Made by a program: the position numbers and the translations under genes
Shown here: positions 287-64,000 of the stretch, piece by piece
How the letters are laid out: each line of letters opens with the position of its first letter
Position numbering within the stretch: position 1 is the first letter of the stretch
Assembly: GCA_047495785.1 (NCBI GenBank)
Contig: JBLDXI010000042.1
Coordinates: forward strand, 3,596,001 to 3,660,000
Direction of reading: 5' to 3'
DNA: 64,000 nucleotides
Source: Lepidodermella squamata
Taxonomy: Eukaryota; Animalia; Gastrotricha
Notes under the pieces: generated by a model
Databases searched by the model: none
What the model was told of the DNA's origin: nothing
What the model saw: the letters and a program-made list of their open reading frames with translations, nothing else

Positions 287-3217
287 TTAGCGCAGAATGA
301 CGGATAGCGGGCCGTTTTTCGACGGCCACACAGCGTGCTGACCAGCCAGGTGCTTGATCACCTTCAAGTTCTTCGTTGCTCGTGCCAGGTAGCGCCGGCA
401 GCGAAGGACGACGTGTCGGCAGAAGAGCCTCACACCGGCAAGCTGATGTAGCTCGCTAATGCGAGTATCGCGAGGCAGATGAAGCGCCGTCCGAAGAGCG
501 GCGTTCTGGACAACTTGTAGATTCGCGACGCGGGACGGCTTGTTGAGACGGCCAACCCACGCCGGTGCGCCATATTCCATCACAGATCGGATCAGCTGCT
601 TGTAGACTAGCAGTGCCGACCTGACGCTGAAGCCAAGACGTTTGCCAGCAACGAGGCGCAGGCCATTAAGGCGGCGCTTGCACTTGTCGGCAACCGTGCG
701 GAAGTGCTCGCGGAACGAGAGCCGCGAGTCGAAAGTCACGCCTAGGTACTTCGTGCTGTCGACGACTTCGAGTTTGACGCCATCGACAAACAGCTCGACA
801 TCTTTCGGCGAGTGCTTCTTGTTGTTACGTCGAAACAACATCGCCACACACTTCGTCGGGTTCAGAGGCAGCCGCCACATCCGGCTCCAGCGAGAGACCC
901 GGTCGAGAGCGGCTTGCACCACCTTGGCCGCGGTTTTAACATCGCGGGCCGAGGCAGCCGTCATCGCATCGTCGGCAAACGACGCGTTCGTCGGGTTGTC
1001 AGTGTCGGCCAACAGGTTGGCCGTGAAAATGATGAATAAGACCGGTGAAAGCGAGCTGCCTTGCGGCACGCCAGCCTTAATTGCGAACAGTCGGCTGATT
1101 GCCTCGCCGACCCGTACGCAGAACTGCCGATCGCGGAGAAACGACGACAGCCAACGGACGAGGCCGACCGGAACCTTCTTTGGCGCCAGCTCGACTAGCT
1201 TCAGACGCAGCCCATCGTGCCACACGGCGTTGAATGCGCCCTTGAAATCGATGAAGGCCGCCACCGTTGCTCTTCGCCGTGTAAAACCGCGAGCGACCAA
1301 CTCCGACAGCCGAAACAGTGCGTCGTCGGTCGAGCGCAGCAAACGGAATCCGCTCTGGTGTTCGGGTAGAATTCCGGCTCGTTCTGCCATCTCGAGTAGC
1401 CGCCGTGCGAGAATCAACTCCAGCAGCTTTGCGATTGTAGGCAAGAGCGAGACCGGTCGATAACCGTCCGGTGTAGACAAATCCTTGCCCGCCCGAGGCA
1501 GCGGCACGATTACGGCGATTTTCCACCGCCGCGGGACGTAGCCAGTTGCCAAGGACAGGTTGAACAAGCAGCGCAGATGCCGGTGAAGCGTCGCGCCGCC
1601 CCGCTTGATTAGCAGATTGCTGATGTCGTCCAGACCCGGTGCTTTGAGTCGCAGCCCTCGAACGGCCCGTCGAAATTCGGACCGGCTGATGAGAAGCGAC
1701 CTATCGGCGTTGCGTCTCGCGTCGCCCACCGGGAGAGGGTTTAAAACATCACTACATTTTTCTGGAAAAGCGACACTGACCTGGTTATGAAGCGCGGCCC
1801 CCTCGGCACACTGGGGTGGCCGCGCATCGCCTTCGAATGAGCTGCACAGGTGCTGCCCAATTACGTCGGCTCGCTGTTCGTCGGTCGTCGCCATAGAACC
1901 ATCGGGCGCCTTGATCGGCTTGAACCGGGCCCTCGGGGTGTAGCCCTCGCCCGAGCTGACCTGCTGGTACTGCCGCCAGAAAGACCGCATGTTGATGTGG
2001 CGGTGCCGCTCGATCGCCTTGATCTTGGCCGCCAGAGCTTTCGCCTTGGCATCCTTGACCAGCCGCTTGACTTCGCGGCATTTCGACTGCCACAACCGCT
2101 TGTAATAAAACGATTTGGTCGACCGCCACAGCCGCTGATAACGGTGTCGACTTCGTATCGCCGCCTTGATTTTCGGTGTCAGGCGCCACCCTCGGATCTT
2201 CTTCGCCGGTACGAGCGGGATCGCCGCGTCCGCCGCGTCGGTCATCGCCTTGACCACTGTCGCGTCGTAGTCGTCGAGTTGCTGCTCGGTCGCCGTCATC
2301 GGGTCCGGCGGTACGACCTCCTCGAGCCGCCGGTCGATTTCAGCCACAAACTTCGGCCAGTCCGCTTCAGCGTAGTTGCGCCGCATTTGCTGCGTCGCGT
2401 TGTCGCCGTTGCCACCAGCCGGGCCCAACTGGAACCGGGTGCAGATCGCCGCGTGGTTGCTGCCAAACGTCTCCGACACCTCCACCTGCTCGCACCGCGC
2501 CGCCACGTCCGGCGACACCAGCCACAGGTCGTTCGTCGAGCCGTTGCCCAAGTGCGACCAGAACGTCGGGTCGTTCGCCTTGTTCAGACACACACCATCG
2601 CCATCCACCACAATCTCGTCGATCAGCCTTCCGGGCCGGTCGTAGCCATCGTAGCCGAGCCAGCCGATCGTAGCGTTGAAGTCGCCGTAGACCATGCAGC
2701 GGCCGCGCTTCAGAACGGTCCTAAGAGCCTCCGCGTCCAGCTCGACATCGGGCGCACGGTAGAACGCCGCCACGGTCAGCTCCTCGTTGCTACCGGGCAG
2801 TCGAAACGTGACCGCGAGCCACTCCGTCGCTGACTTCGGGTCGTCCTCAGCGTAAACATATTCGGTAATAGATATTAATTCTAGGTCTGAGCGAAGGAGA
2901 ACGGCTACACCGCCACCCATTTTGTCCTTTTTTCTCGCGGAAGGGTAGGCAGTGTAGCCGAGCAAATCGTAATTATCAAAATCACTATTTAGCAACCAAG
3001 TTTCAGATAAACATATCACATGTGGCCTAATCTCGTCTACTAAATGAGCATAATCTGCTGGGTGACGTGCGTTGAACCGGTTGCAGTTCCATCCTACGAC
3101 AGACAACCATCTCTCCATACCGGCTTGCCCGTCGGTCCACTTGGCCATACTCAGCGGCGACCCGTTCGACCGTTGTTGCCTGAACTGGGCGGTTGACGCG
3201 GTGCCTTGGCGAACCAT
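287..3217 (-). CDS. LINE ORF2: apurinic-like endonuclease plus reverse transcriptase
   Basis: APE motifs WNCN, LSETW, GGGVA, GDFNA and GSNH. RT motifs KAPGLD, YRPVSLL, QSGFR, GVPQGSSLSP, FADD and YLGV. The real start may be the ATG at 3148, 2 nt after the ORF1 stop. Confidence 0.96.
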   Translation of the reverse strand: MVRQGTASTAQFRQQRSNGSPLSMAKWTDGQAGMERWLSVVGWNCNRFNARHPADYAHLVDEIRPHVICLSETWLLNSDFDNYDLLGYTAYPSARKKDKMGGGVAVLLRSDLELISITEYVYAEDDPKSATEWLAVTFRLPGSNEELTVAAFYRAPDVELDAEALRTVLKRGRCMVYGDFNATIGWLGYDGYDRPGRLIDEIVVDGDGVCLNKANDPTFWSHLGNGSTNDLWLVSPDVAARCEQVEVSETFGSNHAAICTRFQLGPAGGNGDNATQQMRRNYAEADWPKFVAEIDRRLEEVVPPDPMTATEQQLDDYDATVVKAMTDAADAAIPLVPAKKIRGWRLTPKIKAAIRSRHRYQRLWRSTKSFYYKRLWQSKCREVKRLVKDAKAKALAAKIKAIERHRHINMRSFWRQYQQVSSGEGYTPRARFKPIKAPDGSMATTDEQRADVIGQHLCSSFEGDARPPQCAEGAALHNQVSVAFPEKCSDVLNPLPVGDARRNADRSLLISRSEFRRAVRGLRLKAPGLDDISNLLIKRGGATLHRHLRCLFNLSLATGYVPRRWKIAVIVPLPRAGKDLSTPDGYRPVSLLPTIAKLLELILARRLLEMAERAGILPEHQSGFRLLRSTDDALFRLSELVARGFTRRRATVAAFIDFKGAFNAVWHDGLRLKLVELAPKKVPVGLVRWLSSFLRDRQFCVRVGEAISRLFAIKAGVPQGSSLSPVLFIIFTANLLADTDNPTNASFADDAMTAASARDVKTAAKVVQAALDRVSRWSRMWRLPLNPTKCVAMLFRRNNKKHSPKDVELFVDGVKLEVVDSTKYLGVTFDSRLSFREHFRTVADKCKRRLNGLRLVAGKRLGFSVRSALLVYKQLIRSVMEYGAPAWVGRLNKPSRVANLQVVQNAALRTALHLPRDTRISELHQLAGVRLFCRHVVLRCRRYLARATKNLKVIKHLAGQHAVWPSKNGPLSVILR

Positions 3218-4668
3218 GATCGTACCGTGTCGGGCTTGACCAGCGCGGCGAGACTATCCGCGATGACAGCAACAACAGCATCAGCAGGTGACTTGCCTTT
3301 GCCGACATTGTTCGCCGCTGTGAAAGCCGCCACCATCGCCGTCGCCATCGTCTTCAGGATGTCCAGAATGTCCTCCTTGCGGATGACACCGTCGTCGCTA
3401 CCAGTACTCTCTGCCGTCTTCTTCGCCTGCTCGGCCGGCGGGGTCGACTTCTGCTCGGGCTTCTGCTCGGGCTTGCGATCGGCCTTGCCGGCGACGACTT
3501 GACTCCACTTCCTCTTCTCTTCGCAGCCGCCGTAGCTCGCCGAGTGGTCTTTGCCGCAGTTGGCGCAGACCAGGTGCAGAGGCTCCGGGACCACGATCTC
3601 GTCGGTCATCTGCTCAAGGTGGCGTTGCCGCTCCGCCTCGCGCTTCTTCTTCTCAGCTTCGATCGGGCAGGCGCCTAGGACTCGCCGGTCGTGAGGACCA
3701 CTGCAGTTGGCGCACTTCGGCTGCTTCTCAGGACACGCGAGCTCGACGTGGCCGAAACCCTGACACCGGTAGCACTGCCTGGGCTGCAGCTTCTCGACGT
3801 ACGGAACGACCTTCAGAAGCATCGAGCACCAGACAAGGCCAGTATCGAACGCTTTCTTCCGGGCATCTTCACTATTAAATTCAATGACAACTGGGCCATT
3901 GCGGCCGATTTTAGATGGAATTCTAATTAATTTAGAAATACCGTCACCTTTAAGGTCGGTTTCGACTTCGTCTAGCTCGGCCCAGTCGGGAAGGCCGTAC
4001 GTCTTCGCTTTCCAGAGCAAAGGTCGAACCGGTTGTCGCTCGGGTCGTTGGACGGGCCGCTTGGCGTAGTCGCCTGGCTGATGAGACCACGCCTTGCCAC
4101 CAAATGCGTCCGCCGGCCATTTGCCACAGTCGAGGACCTTCGCTTGTCCAGCTGCCGACGTCATCTTCAGGAATAGGCCGCCGTTCTGCATGACTTGCGG
4201 TCTGCCGTAGAGAGCGAACTCGGTGCCGCAGACGCGCCGAAGCTCCTCGAGGATCGCACGATCGCCAGTGATGCCAGACACCCCGTCAATGATGACAGGG
4301 AATTCGGCCATTCGCTTGTTTTTCGGTGCCGGTTTCGGGTTCGGTTTCGGGTTTTGTTTCGGGTTTTGTTTCGGGTTTTGTTTCGGTGCGGCAACCTTTT
4401 GAGCCGCCGCTTCTTCTAGCTTTTTCTTTTTTCTTTCATCTTTCTTGGCCTGCTTCGACTGAGCCGTCCTGAACTCGGTCGGTTCGCCTTCTTCGCCATC
4501 GCCGTTCCTGCTTTTCTTCGCAAGAAAATCGGTTGCGGTTATCGCGTTGTCGTCGTCATCGTTGCGCGCGTCATCATCGGCGCCACGCTTCACGCCACTC
4601 GTCGCCGTTGCGGGGAAACAACAGCAGCTGTTCTCGTCCGGGCAGTTACACGACCGGATAAGGCTCAT
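3151..4668 (-). CDS. LINE ORF1 (gag-like nucleic-acid-binding protein)
   Basis: Three zinc knuckles: CYRCQGFGHVELAC, CANCSGPH..C and CANCGKDH..C. Basic N-terminal region with PKQN/PKPN repeats. Confidence 0.92.
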   Translation of the reverse strand: MSLIRSCNCPDENSCCCFPATATSGVKRGADDDARNDDDDNAITATDFLAKKSRNGDGEEGEPTEFRTAQSKQAKKDERKKKKLEEAAAQKVAAPKQNPKQNPKQNPKPNPKPAPKNKRMAEFPVIIDGVSGITGDRAILEELRRVCGTEFALYGRPQVMQNGGLFLKMTSAAGQAKVLDCGKWPADAFGGKAWSHQPGDYAKRPVQRPERQPVRPLLWKAKTYGLPDWAELDEVETDLKGDGISKLIRIPSKIGRNGPVVIEFNSEDARKKAFDTGLVWCSMLLKVVPYVEKLQPRQCYRCQGFGHVELACPEKQPKCANCSGPHDRRVLGACPIEAEKKKREAERQRHLEQMTDEIVVPEPLHLVCANCGKDHSASYGGCEEKRKWSQVVAGKADRKPEQKPEQKSTPPAEQAKKTAESTGSDDGVIRKEDILDILKTMATAMVAAFTAANNVGKGKSPADAVVAVIADSLAALVKPDTVRSWFAKAPRQPPSSGNNGRTGRR

Positions 4669-4754: not shown

Positions 4755-5350
<596 letters not shown>

Positions 5351-5381
5351 GCGACTGGCTCTCCGAATACCAACACCGACC

Positions 5382-5418
5382 GGCCCTTTTCAGGGCCACA
5401 AGTTGTTGCAACAGTGTT
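5382..5418 (+). promoter_or_regulatory. Histone mRNA 3' stem-loop (SLBP site) plus downstream element
   Basis: GGCCCT-TTTC-AGGGCC at 5382-5397 followed by ACAA. TTGCAACAGTGTT at 5406-5418. AATAAA at 5449. Confidence 0.95.
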
Positions 5419-56178: not shown

Positions 56179-57645
56179 TCAGGTGTCAAATTTGTCCGGC
56201 ATTTTGATTCTAGCTCTAATCTCAGACGGAGGTTTAGTATCAACATTATCCGACGTCCTTAAATAATAATCAGGATCGAACCGGCAATCTTCGAAGTAAC
56301 CAAGCGGCAACCGTTGCGTTGTAGCCGATCGGTTGTTGAACAGCGAGCCGAAAGTCGACGCCATTTCACTGTAGCCAGACCGCGTTATCACATAACGCGT
56401 CGGCTTCGTCGCCAGCACGTACCAGTCAAGCAGTGTCTCCAGCATCGCCCGGCGTCTAACCGTAGCATTCGCCTCGCCGAAATCGTTATCAATATGCCGC
56501 GGCTGGAAATCTAGGGCAAAAGCCGGAATTTTGACCTCGTTCTTCAACCGCTCGACAAACCAATTTTTCACCTCGAGCGAGTCGGACGCCACGTAGACGA
56601 CGCCTTTGCAGTTCTGACCAACTGTCATTTCGACGATTCGAGGCAAAAAGCACATCTCGATTTGCTCCCTAGTCGCCCGCGGCCATTCGTTAGATCGTTG
56701 AAAGAAATTTTTCGAAGAAACTCGAATTTGAACACCGATTCGACACTTCGGGCTGAGATCTGCCTCCAATTCGTGCCAAGTCCTATCGACTAGATGTAAC
56801 TCATTTAACAGCAACTTTTTCGGACGTTGAAGAATTGTCCGAAGGGCGAAAAATGCTAGCAGTTCATAGGTGAGCGGCATTTGAACGATTTCAACCATTT
56901 GAGCAGCGAGGAGTAGCATTCGATCATGAATGGATGTCTGATTCGAGTTAAACGTTAAATCAACCATGTCCAGCATGTTGACCGTGTAACTTATCAAAGG
57001 CGATTTCGATAGTAAAAGGGACATGTCGTTTAGGTCGTAGTAAAAGTGGTGCTTCTCCGAAATTCGATGCTTATTAACCCGTAACAGAGCCGTTAATAAC
57101 GAAGAAGAATTCGTTTTAATCCTGTAAAATTCTTCGTTAATCGCAAAAAATTCGCCGAAATCCCACGGTTCGGTCCAATTGATTAGGAAGACGCGATTGG
57201 AGGCGTAGGCGGCATAGAATAACGAAATCAACCCCCGGAACCGGTCGCCCAGCCCGCCGCAACTCTGCGTTTTCGCATCGATGCATTCGTAGACTAGGAG
57301 TCGAACTGGGCACCGGCCTTCGAGCTGGCAAATCGCATCTTGACGCATTTTTTCAACATAATACCGGCCAACATGGTCGAGAAGTTGTAAAATTCGAGAA
57401 TTCGCAACGTTCGAGTAACGAATTTTGGGCTCGGGTAGCGTTGTTGAAATCCTTAGCACATCGGCGTAGAGGCTGTTGTTTATCGGCGCTTTAAGGTGGC
57501 TGACAACGACGCAAGTTGTGATGATGAAAAGCACGACTCCGACCCAATTTTTGCGTAAATTAAAGCAGAAATCGTGTTGGAAGGCCCGGCAAAACGCGTC
57601 GATGGCTGAGTACAGGTAATTTTCGCGAGATGTATTAGCTTCCAT
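56179..57645 (-). CDS. Type II membrane GT-B glycosyltransferase, fucosyltransferase (NodZ/FUT8/GT23-like), intronless
   Basis: N-terminal TM segment WVGVVLFIITTCVVV. Motifs CGGLGDRFRGL, IGVQIR, VYVASDS, DWYVL and SGYS. Confidence 0.85.
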   Translation of the reverse strand: MEANTSRENYLYSAIDAFCRAFQHDFCFNLRKNWVGVVLFIITTCVVVSHLKAPINNSLYADVLRISTTLPEPKIRYSNVANSRILQLLDHVGRYYVEKMRQDAICQLEGRCPVRLLVYECIDAKTQSCGGLGDRFRGLISLFYAAYASNRVFLINWTEPWDFGEFFAINEEFYRIKTNSSSLLTALLRVNKHRISEKHHFYYDLNDMSLLLSKSPLISYTVNMLDMVDLTFNSNQTSIHDRMLLLAAQMVEIVQMPLTYELLAFFALRTILQRPKKLLLNELHLVDRTWHELEADLSPKCRIGVQIRVSSKNFFQRSNEWPRATREQIEMCFLPRIVEMTVGQNCKGVVYVASDSLEVKNWFVERLKNEVKIPAFALDFQPRHIDNDFGEANATVRRRAMLETLLDWYVLATKPTRYVITRSGYSEMASTFGSLFNNRSATTQRLPLGYFEDCRFDPDYYLRTSDNVDTKPPSEIRARIKMPDKFDT

Positions 57646-57734
57646 TTTTATTTACCCCGGTGGACGTTTCCTGTATTACTGATAGGGGTTTTACATGCCA
57701 GGAATAAGAAAGCTGGCCGTATCGTTACCGTTAC

Positions 57735-57906
57735 CGTCGTTGAATAACTCGGATTTAGGCTTGTTTTCATCCAATTTAAGGTGATGGGTGACAAGTAAAA
57801 GTAGTTTGTTTTTGCCTCTTCATTCATGTAAAAAAGCCGCTTTTACTTGTCACCCGTGACCTTGAAACGGATGTAACCAAGCCTAAATCCGAGTTATTCA
57901 ATGACG
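57735..57906. repeat. Hairpin / MITE-like inverted repeat
   Basis: CGTCGTTGAATAACTCGGATTTAGGCTTG... pairs with ...CAAGCCTAAATCCGAGTTATTCAATGACG. Inner arms GGGTGACAAGTAAAAG / CTTTTACTTGTCACCC. Confidence 0.85.
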
Positions 57907-59739
57907 CGAACGTACGAGGATGGGTCATAGGCTTGTTGCGAGCTGTGAGAATAACTTTGCGGGAGTGCGTCATTTTGACCCAAGACACATTGACCTAACG
58001 TAACATTTCGACCCATTGACCTACGACACGCTGCCCCAATCGTCAACTTGACCCAACTATTTCCATAATAATTTATCTATTTCAAAAACAGGTGACGACA
58101 TTTTGACCCAAGATATTTAGACCCAGATTAAGGTATCAGGATCGAAGAATAGTTAAAATTCATTTTTATCTTTATTTTTATTTTTGATCATGCTACAGAC
58201 CAGTTGTGATCAAAATAGTAGAGCATACTTTGAGTCTTGAATCTTGAAATCATTTGAATGGGTTACTTTGGCGGGCCCTTTTTCTGCCACAGGCAGCTCT
58301 CAGGTATGGCTAACGTCAGGTAAACTTTGGTTCATCGATGCGTAACGAAAATGTGAAACTTTCTTCGATCGCAACCCTGAGAGAAAGCGAGATATCCTAG
58401 GCCAATTTTTCATTTTATTAGGGATTTTGGAAAAATTACGGATTCGACAGCTCGATTTAGAACACCACCGCTTATTTTTCTGTATATTTCGAGATATCAT
58501 TGGTTCATCTTAACGCTGGCCGTCTAGAAGGGCAATTCTCCCTTTGTTATCTGTTTTTTCGACGTTCAAACACCTAAGAGATAATTGAAGCATAAGCTAG
58601 CTTTCCAAATCTGCAGCGTTTCCGAATTCCTACTAATAAAAATGTCGGCCCAATATAAACCTACTAATAAACCCAATCATCTCCTTTGTGTTACTCACAA
58701 GTGTTACCCTCCGCTGTTAGGCGAGCTACTCAGCGGCGTGTTCAGCGCGCGCGGCGAAAAATTAATCCGAGACACTTAAAGCACCTGACTCTCTCGCCGA
58801 TATATGGACGCGCGCGCGCGGTTGTGTTACGCTCGTCAACCCGCGGCGAAAAGTAAACAATTTTGGGTCGAAATAATGTTGATGTAAGCTCCATCCTTTA
58901 AATAAAAAGCAGTGATCCATCCTTGGGTTAGTAGTATATCCCTTCCACTTCCTCCAAGAACACATCATCAATCCCCACCAACCGCGCATTAACGGTGACC
59001 GCATCGTTTACGGAATAACTGCGGTGAAAATGTCAGCTGGCAACACTGTCTAGGACGAGAGCCCCATTATTAGAAGGGCTTTCAAAATCGGCGCTACGAC
59101 CTTTCCGGGCTAGGTAAATGAAAGGAAAAAATACATTTGTTGCGCCACTTTTCATTAATTCAATCGAAAAAGCGGATGGGATGGGAATATAGAAGCGCGG
59201 AGAAGCGCCCTCTTCTGTTCCTAATGCGCAGCAGCCGCTGAGGCTAACAGACAGTCGATCAATCCTCCCATCTCCCATGGTCAACCTTGGTGAAGTATTC
59301 GATAATGCGGGCCCGCTGGACGGTTTAATCAACTCATCTTCGCCCACTACTACAACTTGTCTCCAGTCTTTCGAATTACGGTTTGAAAAAGTGGCGGTTA
59401 TTTTGCCTTGCAGTAGTGAAGGGTGATGAATGTGACGCTAAGTGATTGAGGTTGATGCAGACAGGTGATCGTAATCAGGAATAAAAAGATCTCAATTTAT
59501 CATGATTGCAAGTGAGAATTTAAAGCTACGGCGCATGTGCCGTTTGATGCCATTTTATGATCGCAAGTGATATCTCACTTCCAGCGCGCAAGCGCGGTCA
59601 CGATAAAATGTTATATTGCTACGTGCGTTCGCATGATTTTATGGTAGCTCAAATCCCCATGCGCGCGCGCATCTCCAGTGAGAATTTCAAATATATCAGT
59701 GAGAATCATGAAAAATTTCTATCCGGGTATGCCTCTCCG

Positions 59740-60564: not shown

Positions 60565-62748
60565 TTGGAAATTGAACTTCGAAATTCGAAATCGGTCATT
60601 CAAGATCTCGAATCTAAGCTGACGTCATCTTCCGCTGAAATCGGAGCCTTGAAGGAAAAAGTCTCATTTCTCGAGAGAGAAAATTCAGATTTTCGCAAAA
60701 AAGTCGACGCCCTTGATAAGAATTTCGCCGAATATCGCGCACGTCATGAAGAAGAGCGGCGACGAACTGCGAAGAAAGTCAAGAATTTGCAAAAGCTGGT
60801 CTCAAAACATCGAGGCAAGATTGCTAAAAGTTTTCTACCACCGCCGCCGCCTCCTGTCGAGCCTAAACTCGATAAGCCGGCCAAGATCATCCACCCGAAG
60901 CCGAGCGAGTTCATGTCCGACGCTGGTCGCAACAATTTCACGACGAACAAGAGGAGCTTCGAAAAACTGATCCGAATCATTACAAGTTCAGCGATGGCCC
61001 TTCATCTACGCAGTCCGTCGGCTTATTACTTCTTATAATATGCCTCGAAAATGATCATTTTGCCATCCGAACGGTACGTACAACGGCTTGTGCCTGTTGA
61101 ATACTGGGGCGGGCAGTCTGATGTCGCGTTCAAATTACTTCAAGAAGAGGCGGAAACGAACGGCGATTTTAACAACAAAAAGGGCCTCGTGATTTTATCT
61201 TGCGACGAAGTGAGCGTTTCCAATAAGCGTTGAAATCGACTCCAACCCGAGACGGCCGTACAGTTGGCATGACGCTGGACAGCCCGAACCAGCGAGCCGA
61301 GAACATGCTCAGCTTCATGGCTGGCGACCTATGTTTGCTGGTTTGCTGCACTGGTTTGCAGGTAAATATCGCAAACTGGTCTTGGATAAACAGCGTGGTT
61401 GGCAGTTCGTTCAAGCACCCGTGCAACCCGGACTGGGAGGTGTACATCTTAATCGATGTCCCTCATTTGCTGAAATGCGCTCGCAACAACGTGCTGCACA
61501 AGCGATTCATAATGTCGAATGGCGGCTGCGTTAGCTGAGACCTAATTCGAGCCCTGTTCGATTGGGACAAACAGCAACAGTGGCGCATGATACCTCGGAT
61601 AACTCGGCATCACGTCCAAACCGTCTTCCTTAACTCGACTGCTCCTCAAAAATGCGAGTTGCCTATGCGGCCCAGGTTCGTTCGCGGTCAATGGTACGCG
61701 CGATCATGGCCATGTTCGGAAATAGCCAGCGAAAGTTGGTTGCCGAATTTTGTTAGCTATTCAACGACTGGCTCGACTGCCTCAACAAGTCAACTTACGA
61801 GCGAGCGAAAGAAAGCCGTAATCCCGCCCTCGTGCCGTATACATCGAGCAACGAACCTCGTCTCGCTTGGTTTGAAACCGAATTTGCCACAAAATTGACG
61901 GCATTTCAAGTCCGCAATGGAGAGAACAAGCGGCAAGTGACGTTGAAGGATGGCACCCAGCGCAATTACACCACCGCTTTTAACGAAGCTACGTTCAAGG
62001 GTCTAATTCTAACTTCGACGAATTTCCCCAATGTCGCCCGCCTTAGCCTTGACCTACAAGTGCCCTTCATCATGGCGAACCGTTTCAATCAGGACGGACT
62101 GGAGCAGCTGTTCTGCCAGTTTCGGCAATGTGGCGGCGGCAAAACTAACCCGTCCGTGTTCGACATTTTCGTATATGCGGCAAAGCGGTTGATTGCCAGC
62201 CCAGTTTTCGGCATTCCCGGCGGATCGAATGTTCGCGTGAAAAAACACATCGGTGGAATTCGGTTTAATACTACGATGCGCAAGTTGAAGAAAGAGATGA
62301 TTGGCAAAATTAACGCCGCGAAAGTGTTGAAAGTGGGTCTACCAGCCGATCTTGGTCGCAACCCGTTATCTCTGTCCTACATGCTGGTTTTATCACTCGC
62401 CGCCTCGGTCTAAGCAGCGACTCTGCAAATATCGAGTGGGCCGAGTGGGTCGCGCAGTGTAGCCGCGGCGGTCTTGTTCACACTCACTACCGCGTCAAGA
62501 CTATTTTGACGGCGATTTGCCATCCCGACAATGCGGGTCATCTACTCGACGACGATTTGCTGCTCTTTGACGGATCGCGCGTTCGAGGCGTATCGCAATA
62601 CGCCCGTGTGTTGTTTTCGTCGCGAGCAGTTCGATACAATCGCGATCACGAGGCGCTGCCGTTGCGAATGCGGCTCTACAACGCGACCTGTAGTTCGCCA
62701 GGTTCTTCGACTACAGCCACTGGCAAGAGGCGTGGCAAGAAGCAGTAG
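60565..62748 (+). pseudogene. P-element/THAP9-type transposase with frameshifts and stops
   Basis: Across frames: LRSPSAY, LSCDEV, DVPHLLKCARN, KMRVAYAAQV, FNDWLDCLN, RFNQDGLEQLF..R..GG..NPS and W....SRGGL, ending in the basic tail KRRGKKQ*. Confidence 0.88.
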
Positions 62749-62791
62749 GTGGCTAGGTGTCTGTTTCGCGCAAAAATCGCGTGAAGAGACC

Positions 62792-62828
62792 TGCTCTTTT
62801 CAAGGCCACAACGAATTGCAACAGTGTT
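62792..62828 (+). promoter_or_regulatory. Degenerate histone-type 3' stem-loop plus downstream 13-mer after the transposase stop
   Basis: 62788-62828 aligns ungapped with 5378-5418 at 34 of 41 nt. Confidence 0.7.
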
Positions 62829-63344
62829 GTTTCGTCCCGTGTTCCGTGTTGTCTTTTCAAAATAGAAATTCAACAATTTTTTGGCAACATTTTTCGATAA
62901 AATTAGTCTCGGTCAATAGATCACATCCTGAATTTTACGGTTATGCAAAAATAATTTTGATGCCCACTTACAAATCACACGTTTTCTAGGGTAAATTCAC
63001 AGCAAAAGGAGAGTGTGCGCGCGCCACTGTTCGCCTCGTTTCCTTTGATGCGTAATCGCGTGTCGAGTCCATAGTGCATTAGTCTCAAGACGAGATGAAC
63101 CTAGAAATGCATTCATCTCGTTAACGAAAATGATGAGACATTAAAGTTTCGTGACAGTCCCATTAAACACGGCTAGCTCATAATGAATCGGATTAGATTT
63201 TCCCTTTTGGACACCCTGGGATCGTAGTCACCCTATTGAAATTTAAAAACATTAGGCTATAACAAGATTTATGAAGAATTATCACATCATCGTCGTTTTT
63301 ATTGCTCTTTTTCTTTATAAAAAGCTTCATAAAAAAAGTTCGCC

Positions 63345-64000
63345 TCAGGTGTCAAATTTGTCCGGCATTTTGATTCTAGCTCTAATCTCAGACGGAGGTT
63401 TAGTATCAACATTATCCGACGTCCTTAAATAATAATCAGGATCAAACCGGCAATCTTCGAAATAGCCAAGCGGCAACCGTTGCGTTGTAGCCGATCGGTT
63501 GTTGAACAGCGAGCCGAAAGTCGACGCCATTTCACTGTAGCCAGACCGCGTTATCACATAACGCGTCGGCTTCGTCGCCAGCACGTACCAGTCAAGCAGC
63601 GTCTCCAGCATCGCCCGGCGCCTAACCGTAGCGTTCGCATCGCCAAAGTCGTTATCAATATGCCGCGGCTGGAAATCTAGGGCAAAAGCCGGAATTTTGA
63701 CCTCGTTCTTCAACCGCTCGACAAACCAATTTTTCACCTCGAGCGAGTCGGACGCCACATAGACGACGCCTTTGCAGTTTTGACCAACTGTCATCTCGAC
63801 GATTCGAGGCAGAAAGCACATCTCGATTTGCTCCCTAGTCGCCCGCGGCCATTCGTTAGATCTCTGAAAGAAATGTTTCGATGAAACTCGAATTTGAACA
63901 CCGATTCGGCATTTCGGATTGAGATCTGCCTCCAATTCGTGCCAAGTCCTATCGACTAGATGTAACTCATTTAACAGCAATTTTTTCGGTCGCTGAAGAA
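63345..64000 (-). CDS. Fucosyltransferase-like gene copy 2 (3' part only, cut by the window edge)
   Basis: Three amino-acid differences from copy 1 over 211 aa. Flanking similarity extends to 63144, matching 55941. Confidence 0.85.
   Translation of the reverse strand, partial: LQRPKKLLLNELHLVDRTWHELEADLNPKCRIGVQIRVSSKHFFQRSNEWPRATREQIEMCFLPRIVEMTVGQNCKGVVYVASDSLEVKNWFVERLKNEVKIPAFALDFQPRHIDNDFGDANATVRRRAMLETLLDWYVLATKPTRYVITRSGYSEMASTFGSLFNNRSATTQRLPLGYFEDCRFDPDYYLRTSDNVDTKPPSEIRARIKMPDKFDT

Follow-up and report, generated by a model that had tools for sequence, protein, structure and literature searches.

The 64,000-nucleotide stretch of the Lepidodermella squamata genome analysed here (hereafter the window) contains a decayed P-type transposase gene followed by a sequence that resembles the 3′ end of a histone message, which raises the question of how such an ending came to stand behind a transposase and whether it ever served one. 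To our knowledge, histone-type 3′ ends in animals are treated by textbooks as exclusive to replication-dependent histone messages. Based on a comparison of transposon copies with host histone and non-histone genes, we propose that the transposon family probably borrowed a histone-style ending for its own message.

The window itself supplies a host reference, a histone H3 gene on the forward strand (4941–5351) whose 3′ cassette (5378–5418, same strand) consists of GACC, GGCCCT-TTTC-AGGGCC, ACAAGTTG and TTGCAACAGTGTT. This cassette scores 30.1 bits (E 1.4e-4) against the Rfam histone stem-loop model RF00032 and folds at −11.4 kcal/mol. Perfect stems of the form GGCYCT-TTTN-AGRGCC number 95 genome-wide compared with 2 for the reversed control, with the loop TTTC in 94 of the 95, and the 13-mer TTGCAACAGTGTT occurs at 89 sites compared with 4 for the reversed control, nearly always 8 nt past a histone-type stem. 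Host cassettes sampled downstream of H3, H4 and H2A-like ORFs share the order RACC, stem-loop, ACAAGTTA/G and 13-mer, and the distance from stop codon to stem in host genes is ~23–64 nt. The genome is rich in such endings, with numerous histone genes and ~90 histone-type cassettes. Judged by its near-constant position, the 13-mer plays the part of the histone downstream element in this species, although it is not purine-rich. A search for U7 snRNA produced only a partial match to Rfam RF00066 (E 0.39), and eight non-histone occurrences of the 13-mer, read antisense in a search for a U7-like RNA, are not accompanied by an Sm site and hairpin. Host histone stem-loops score 26–33 bits on RF00032, under its 34-bit gathering cut-off; the zero matches that Rfam returns for the window at gathering thresholds, the host H3 stem-loop included, therefore reflect a threshold that is too strict for this species and say little about the candidate.

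The transposase cassette occupies positions 62788–62828 of the forward strand and reads GACC-TGCTCT-TTTC-AAGGCC-ACAACGAA-TTGCAACAGTGTT. Aligned without gaps to the H3 cassette, it is identical at 34 of 41 positions with the same spacing, and the seven mismatches fall in the stem (three) and in the spacer (four), which reproduces in full the match given in the preliminary description. The 5′ flank GACC (62788–62791) is identical to the host flank (RACC), the 8-nt spacer ACAACGAA (62808–62815; host ACAAGTTA/G) has kept its length and the motif ACAA with the remainder diverged, and the 13-mer (62816–62828) is an exact copy of the invariant host element, placed 8 nt past the stem like that of host H3, H4 and H2A. 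The histone-type stem-loop between them, TGCTCT-TTTC-AAGGCC (62792–62807), is degenerate: the two arms pair at four of six positions, one of these a G·U wobble, with the loop and the second G-C pair retained and two pairs lost. It does not fold into a hairpin (−1.6 kcal/mol, z +0.34, compared with z −3.3 for H3), and has no match to RF00032 at E≤10. The complete histone hairpin, a 6-bp stem with G-C as its second pair and a 4-nt loop whose first and third bases are U, is thus not preserved here, whereas it is present in a copy of a second subfamily described below (C59). On the strength of the ungapped match and identical spacing, the window cassette is genuinely related to the host histone 3′ module, though degenerate, and the module in this particular copy is dead. 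The preliminary description had noted a weakened stem and general decay; the stem has no fold, and the reading frame of the window copy is shattered.

The gene that precedes the cassette is a remnant of a P-superfamily transposase on the forward strand (60565–62748), identified from its ORFs, Pfam domains and homologous copies. Frameshifts have broken it into at least six ORF fragments, at 60565–61038 (a coiled coil), 61051–61233, 61230–61538, 61587–61898, 61832–62413 and 62506–62748, and upstream of ~60565 the copy is 5′-truncated or overrun by other repeats. Pfam TNP-like_RNaseH_C is detected at 61832–62413 with 28.4 bits (cut-off 24), the sister copy C40 encodes GBD (67.3 bits) and TNP-like RNaseH_N (30.9 bits), and the C59 copy encodes GBD and RNaseH_C, in agreement with the original assignment of the gene to the P-element type. 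The window transposase shares 64–87% amino-acid or 67–80% DNA identity with the copies on C40, C30, C29 and C38. A HMMER search against 1.8 billion representative proteins recovered 2490 relatives, none of them more than 38% identical; the closest public relatives are 30–38% identical, and the better matches have the full THAP / HTH / RNaseH / GBD architecture. The 5′ 1.3 kb of C40, the only 5′-complete copy and itself decayed, contains no Cys-rich or THAP-like ORF by ORF listing alone, and has no significant similarity to the histone loci with which it was compared for a histone-like promoter.

At its 3′ end, the transposase terminates with a TAG stop codon (62746–62748, forward strand) within a 22-nt block (62731–62752) that is identical in five of the seven copies retaining this region. 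A faint histone H4 tail had been suspected at 62720–62757, where we instead find the conserved basic C-terminus of the transposase itself, present in all copies. The stem begins at 62792, leaving 43 nt between the stop and the stem. Beyond the cassette, the remaining 3′ untranslated and subterminal region (62829–63056, forward strand) has no AATAAA or ATTAAA hexamer, and neither hexamer is conserved between the transposase stop and the terminal repeat in the 3′ regions of the copies. The element closes with a 33-bp 3′ terminal inverted repeat (63057–63089, reverse strand), which reads CTTGAGACTAATGCACTATGGACTCGACACGCG inward and was recognised by its inverted match to the 5′ terminus of C40; the family termini have the sequence CTTGWGACTAAT. 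This places the end of the element at 63089, with the cassette ~250 nt further in. Five other copies share the 33-bp terminus, which is found on C17, C30, C58 and C13 with differing sequence outside.

Immediately past the window terminus, positions 63090–63097 (ACGAGATG) are a candidate half of an 8-bp target-site duplication, the 5′ end of this copy being missing. Related short elements of ~775 bp with termini CTTGGGACTAAT are flanked by perfect 8-bp duplications in six of seven cases examined (L040, L042, L049, L054, L056 and L062; none at L058), and L088, likewise short but with the ends of subfamily B, is flanked on either side by CGCTTAAT. Duplications of 8 bp are a hallmark of the P superfamily. 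Judged by its domains, terminus and relatives, ~60565–63089 is a dead, 5′-truncated copy of a P-superfamily cut-and-paste transposon.

We compared the element copies as natural sequences. The transposase C-terminus and stop codon are retained in exactly seven genomic copies, and all four copies with an uninterrupted 3′ region, which make up the window's own subfamily (A) in the comparison of stems below, namely the window copy (C42), C30, C17 and C58, carry the cassette at the same place. The stem follows the stop after 43 nt in C42 and C30, 42 nt in C17, and 22 nt in C58, where a local deletion has occurred. The outside flanks of C42, C30 and C17 are unrelated, indicating separate insertions, whereas C17 and C58 share their flank and so represent a single insertion that was later duplicated, C58 being the old duplicate. 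C38 lacks ~100 nt spanning the cassette, as a result of a deletion between GAGTTG microhomologies, and since this copy groups with C17, C29 and C40b, its loss of the cassette is derived. C29 and C40b are 96–100% identical to each other in the 3′ region, and both are broken by unrelated sequence right after the stop. Among the findings that would refute its reading, the preliminary description had named a cassette missing from other copies or lying beyond the element end. Neither refutes it: the cassette is found inside the terminal repeat, and three insertions whose flanks differ share it with a second subfamily.

None of the four subfamily-A stems is intact, and the subfamily has a private variant, T at stem position 4. 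Within subfamily A, conservation of the cassette is just modestly above that of other blocks of the 3′ region. The terminal repeat is near-invariant among copies that differ by ~30% elsewhere, so that much of the divergence must have built up before the lineages lost their mobility, with selection still acting on them, and the conservation profile is informative for this reason. The ~775-bp short derivatives are abundant and have no cassette. Together with the loss in C38, this indicates that the cassette is not needed for mobilisation in trans.

The second subfamily (B; C59 and C32) has 43–52% amino-acid identity to the window family. In C59, the cassette consists of GGCC, GGCCCT-TTTT-AGGGCC, ACAAGTAT and TTGCAACAGTGTT, and lies between the ORF and a related 3′ terminus. 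Its stem is perfect, folding at −12.2 kcal/mol and scoring 24.8 bits (E 0.004) on RF00032, compared with 26–33 bits for host genes. C59 is the sole perfect histone-type stem with a TTTT loop genome-wide, all 94 host loops being different, and the C32 fragment (88% identical to C59) has the same variant with two substitutions. Contigs of an independent DNA-like run, X1, the only run recovered when sequencing runs were searched for expression of the element, reproduce the C59 sequence exactly and contain a further subfamily-B variant; the second organism of the study to which X1 belongs yielded nothing related. The C59 frame has lost ~120 codons from its end and continues across the stem with no stop codon, which marks this copy as a deletion derivative. 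The expectation that better-preserved copies would have a perfect stem is borne out by C59, which combines such a stem with the 13-mer. No intact or demonstrably active autonomous copy was found, and none of the copies found unites an intact frame, a stop codon and an intact cassette.

When the ~490-nt 3′ regions of subfamilies A and B are compared, only two blocks can be aligned: one is the cassette, identical at 44/52 positions (E 2e-11), and the other the terminal repeat, at 25/29 (E 2e-4). The likeness of element and host cassettes extends from 2–4 nt before the stem to the end of the 13-mer, and the element–host comparison revealed no histone coding or other UTR sequence in common, so that the functional module alone is shared. 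As each subfamily has its private variant (the stem T4 in A, the TTTT loop in B), the pattern argues for inheritance and against recent copying from the host. The cassette is absent from more distant P-type relatives, both within this genome and outside it. By their coordinates, ten further distant P-type ORF loci are not close to any of the exact 13-mers or perfect stem-loops listed genome-wide, and two distant relatives from other species (L100 and L101), which are uninformative at their distance (≤38% identity), have no histone-type stem-loop. In the family described here, the module belongs integrally to the transposase 3′ untranslated region and has long been retained there, in sense orientation and, at 42–43 nt past the stop, within the range of distances seen in host genes.

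The preliminary description had relied on the stem-loop being essentially confined to histone genes. This does not hold here, since a conserved cassette is also present in two families of non-histone host genes. A gene for a single-pass membrane protein (C1) and its diverged paralogue (C29) carry it 27–32 nt past their stops, with AACC, a perfect stem-loop, ACAAGT and the 13-mer all invariant, while changes between their coding sequences fall mostly at third positions and the UTR surrounding the cassette is unalignable. A gene for a proline-rich membrane protein on C30 also has the cassette. None of these genes on C1, C29 and C30 encodes a histone or a convincing Pfam domain. By the predicted products of the genes that carry it, the cassette thus extends beyond histone genes in this animal, and its retention by non-histone families while the UTR around it diverged makes a working, portable module more plausible.

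In our favoured explanation, which we consider reasonably probable on the sequence comparisons above, a transposon-borne histone module ended the transposase message by the histone pathway. The lineage would carry, in the transposase 3′ untranslated region and in the sense orientation, a host histone-type 3′-end module composed of a stem-loop such as SLBP (stem-loop binding protein) recognises and, 8 nt on, the invariant 13-mer. In once-active elements, the transposase transcript would have been cleaved a few nucleotides past the stem and left without a poly(A) tail, which would place the transposase message under the same control as histone messages and could result in replication-coupled or oocyte-type expression of the transposase. 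We infer both this histone-style processing and the S-phase or oocyte timing of the message from the structure and placement of the module.

Alternatively, a ~45-nt piece of a host histone 3′ end may have been captured once or twice, through transduplication or repair-templated capture, and carried along as a passenger with no role in expression, its likeness to the host being kept by descent and chance. Cut-and-paste elements are known to capture host fragments, every subfamily-A stem is broken, and both the short derivatives and C38 manage without the cassette, all of which would suit a passenger. Against this, exactly the functional module is present, free of flanking histone sequence, and it sits in sense orientation at a histone-like distance past the stop. 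Moreover, besides the terminal repeat the cassette is the sole 3′ block that survives between subfamilies whose transposases are ~50% identical, a divergence over which a neutral 41-mer should have been erased. The footprint shared by A and B weakens the neutral passenger, which we regard as unlikely. It is possible that the two subfamilies made independent captures instead of inheriting one cassette under selection; that both should have done so at equivalent positions would in turn point to selection. A cassette that is functional in another capacity, such as a strong terminator or insulator against read-through into or out of the element, a way to escape silencing or surveillance that depends on poly(A), or an anchor to the histone locus body at the level of DNA or RNA, would draw on the same structural evidence as ending the message by the histone pathway, since this evidence does not discriminate between consequences of processing. 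Nevertheless, the histone-like placement in sense, ~43 nt past the stop with ~250 nt of subterminal sequence still to come, is the one that a signal for ending a message requires, and no specific evidence points to any of the alternative roles, so we consider them improbable.

The remaining two explanations can be given hardly any weight. The presence of the H3 gene in the same window and the abundance of histone genes in this genome would make it conceivable that the transposon landed in or beside a decayed histone gene, the cassette being part of the flank. This is refuted by the position of the cassette inside the terminal repeat and by its recurrence, equally placed within the element, in the second subfamily and in insertions whose flanks are unrelated, and there is no histone coding remnant upstream. 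Chance resemblance has nothing in its favour other than the failure of the window stem to fold, and is likewise refuted: when the window was simulated 200 times with a first-order Markov model, no site agreed with the H3 41-mer at more than 27/41 positions, compared with the 34/41 observed, and the exact 13-mer, otherwise nearly confined to histone 3′ ends, occurs at two sites in the window (the H3 end and the transposon cassette) where 0.15 would be expected.

With regard to known systems, the element resembles the Drosophila P element and its wider superfamily (with THAP9-like transposases, e.g. zebrafish Pdre2) in its RNase H-like domain split by a GTP-binding insertion domain, terminal inverted repeats of ~31–33 bp, 8-bp target-site duplications, and internally deleted and short non-autonomous derivatives. 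It is unlike them in its low identity to public relatives (30–38%), in having no THAP domain recognisable from ORF listings in its one, decayed copy with a 5′ end, and in a 3′ untranslated region that holds a histone-type stem-loop and downstream element. The cassette likewise shares with histone mRNA 3′ ends (RF00032, SLBP/U7) the 4-nt flank, 6-bp stem, 4-nt U-rich loop, ACAA, 8-nt spacer and 13-mer, the sense orientation ~43 nt past the stop and, in C59, recognition by the Rfam model, whereas it follows a transposase gene and its window stem is broken and has no Rfam match. As in transduplication and Pack-MULEs, a short piece of a host gene is found inside an element bounded by terminal inverted repeats; unlike Pack-MULE-type captures, the piece is a precise cis-regulatory RNA module, placed to serve the element's own gene and kept across diverged subfamilies. 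The novelty lies in the combination of a known type of transposon with a known histone 3′ module. No precedent for a transposon or transposase gene with a histone-type 3′ end was found in the full-text literature searched, which is not proof of absence, and a 2026 survey of histone 3′-end evolution, read for this question, likewise gave no transposon with such an end.

Taken more broadly, the transposase message may have been placed on the histone 3′ pathway and thereby tied to replication or to the oocyte and early embryo, with the same pathway also having spread to non-histone host genes as a portable cassette, a combined proposal that we regard as plausible and put forward tentatively. Poly(A)-selected RNA-seq would miss transcripts that end in this way, which is a warning to annotators. 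If our interpretation is correct, this would be the first transposon that plugs into the histone 3′-end pathway, and the arrangement would provide a simple route for timing the transposase to S phase, or to the germline or early embryo. Cut-and-paste transposition followed by sister-templated repair in S phase gains copies. Together with the non-histone host genes, the transposon suggests that the histone 3′ pathway may have a wider clientele in this lineage.

A 22-nt block, CGTGGCAAGAAGCAGTAGGTGG, lies across the transposase stop of the window's P-type transposon (window 62731-62752) and is identical in five of seven transposon copies that differ elsewhere by 12-37%; a genome-wide search recovered it at no further site beyond these copies. 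In the second transposon subfamily, represented by the C59 copy, the cassette is directly followed by a region (L084:2404-2681) of which the DNA contigs of sequencing run X1 contain a further variant with ~91% identity. This variant was absent from the matches listed in genome searches; it may represent either allelic variation or a copy missing from the assembly.

The ends of the window's transposon are related to the termini (CTTGGGACTAAT...) of short non-coding elements that form a family with a length of ~775 bp (e.g., G000:C2:1074022-1074798, L040) and do not carry the histone cassette. At least 12 pairs of such termini were detected genome-wide, and perfect 8-bp target duplications in six of the seven examined pairs imply fairly recent mobilisation of these elements by a P-type transposase.

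The transposon remnant is contained in a 5.7-kb repeat-rich stretch flanked on both sides by members of a tandem pair of paralogous genes (window 56179-57645 and 63345-64000, both on the minus strand); the gene, of ~488 aa, is uncharacterised and has no Pfam match. A short palindromic element (window 57729-57912), whose two 83-nt arms are 83% complementary, has more than 30 genomic copies at 86-91% identity, and its matches to microRNA models (mir-548 and others) were weak and far under threshold. Directly upstream of the H3 gene, a LINE-type retroelement on the minus strand (window 287-4668) comprises two ORFs, of which one (3151-4668) is gag-like with a CCHC motif and the other (287-3217) encodes an endonuclease/reverse transcriptase.

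Genome-wide, the element downstream of nearly every histone stem-loop lacks purine-rich character, and no convincing U7 snRNA was found in the genome by Rfam (best E 0.39). A perfect stem-loop and 13-mer also occur 23 nt downstream of a proline-rich membrane protein ORF (G000:C30:219125-219937, L080) ending in the AT-hook-like motif RPRRGRPKK, and its paralogue (G000:C15:2740928-2741740, L075) has retained the 13-mer and lost the stem. In a non-histone family of single-pass membrane protein genes (G000:C1:870100-870850, L102; G000:C29:2081850-2082600, L103; G000:C31:362350-363100, L104, and 370500-371250, L105), a perfect histone stem-loop with the 13-mer is located 27-32 nt past the stop. When the C1 and C29 paralogues are compared, the cassette shows no change, whereas the UTR around it can no longer be aligned, and this pattern of conservation suggests that the histone 3′-end pathway is used by non-histone host genes.
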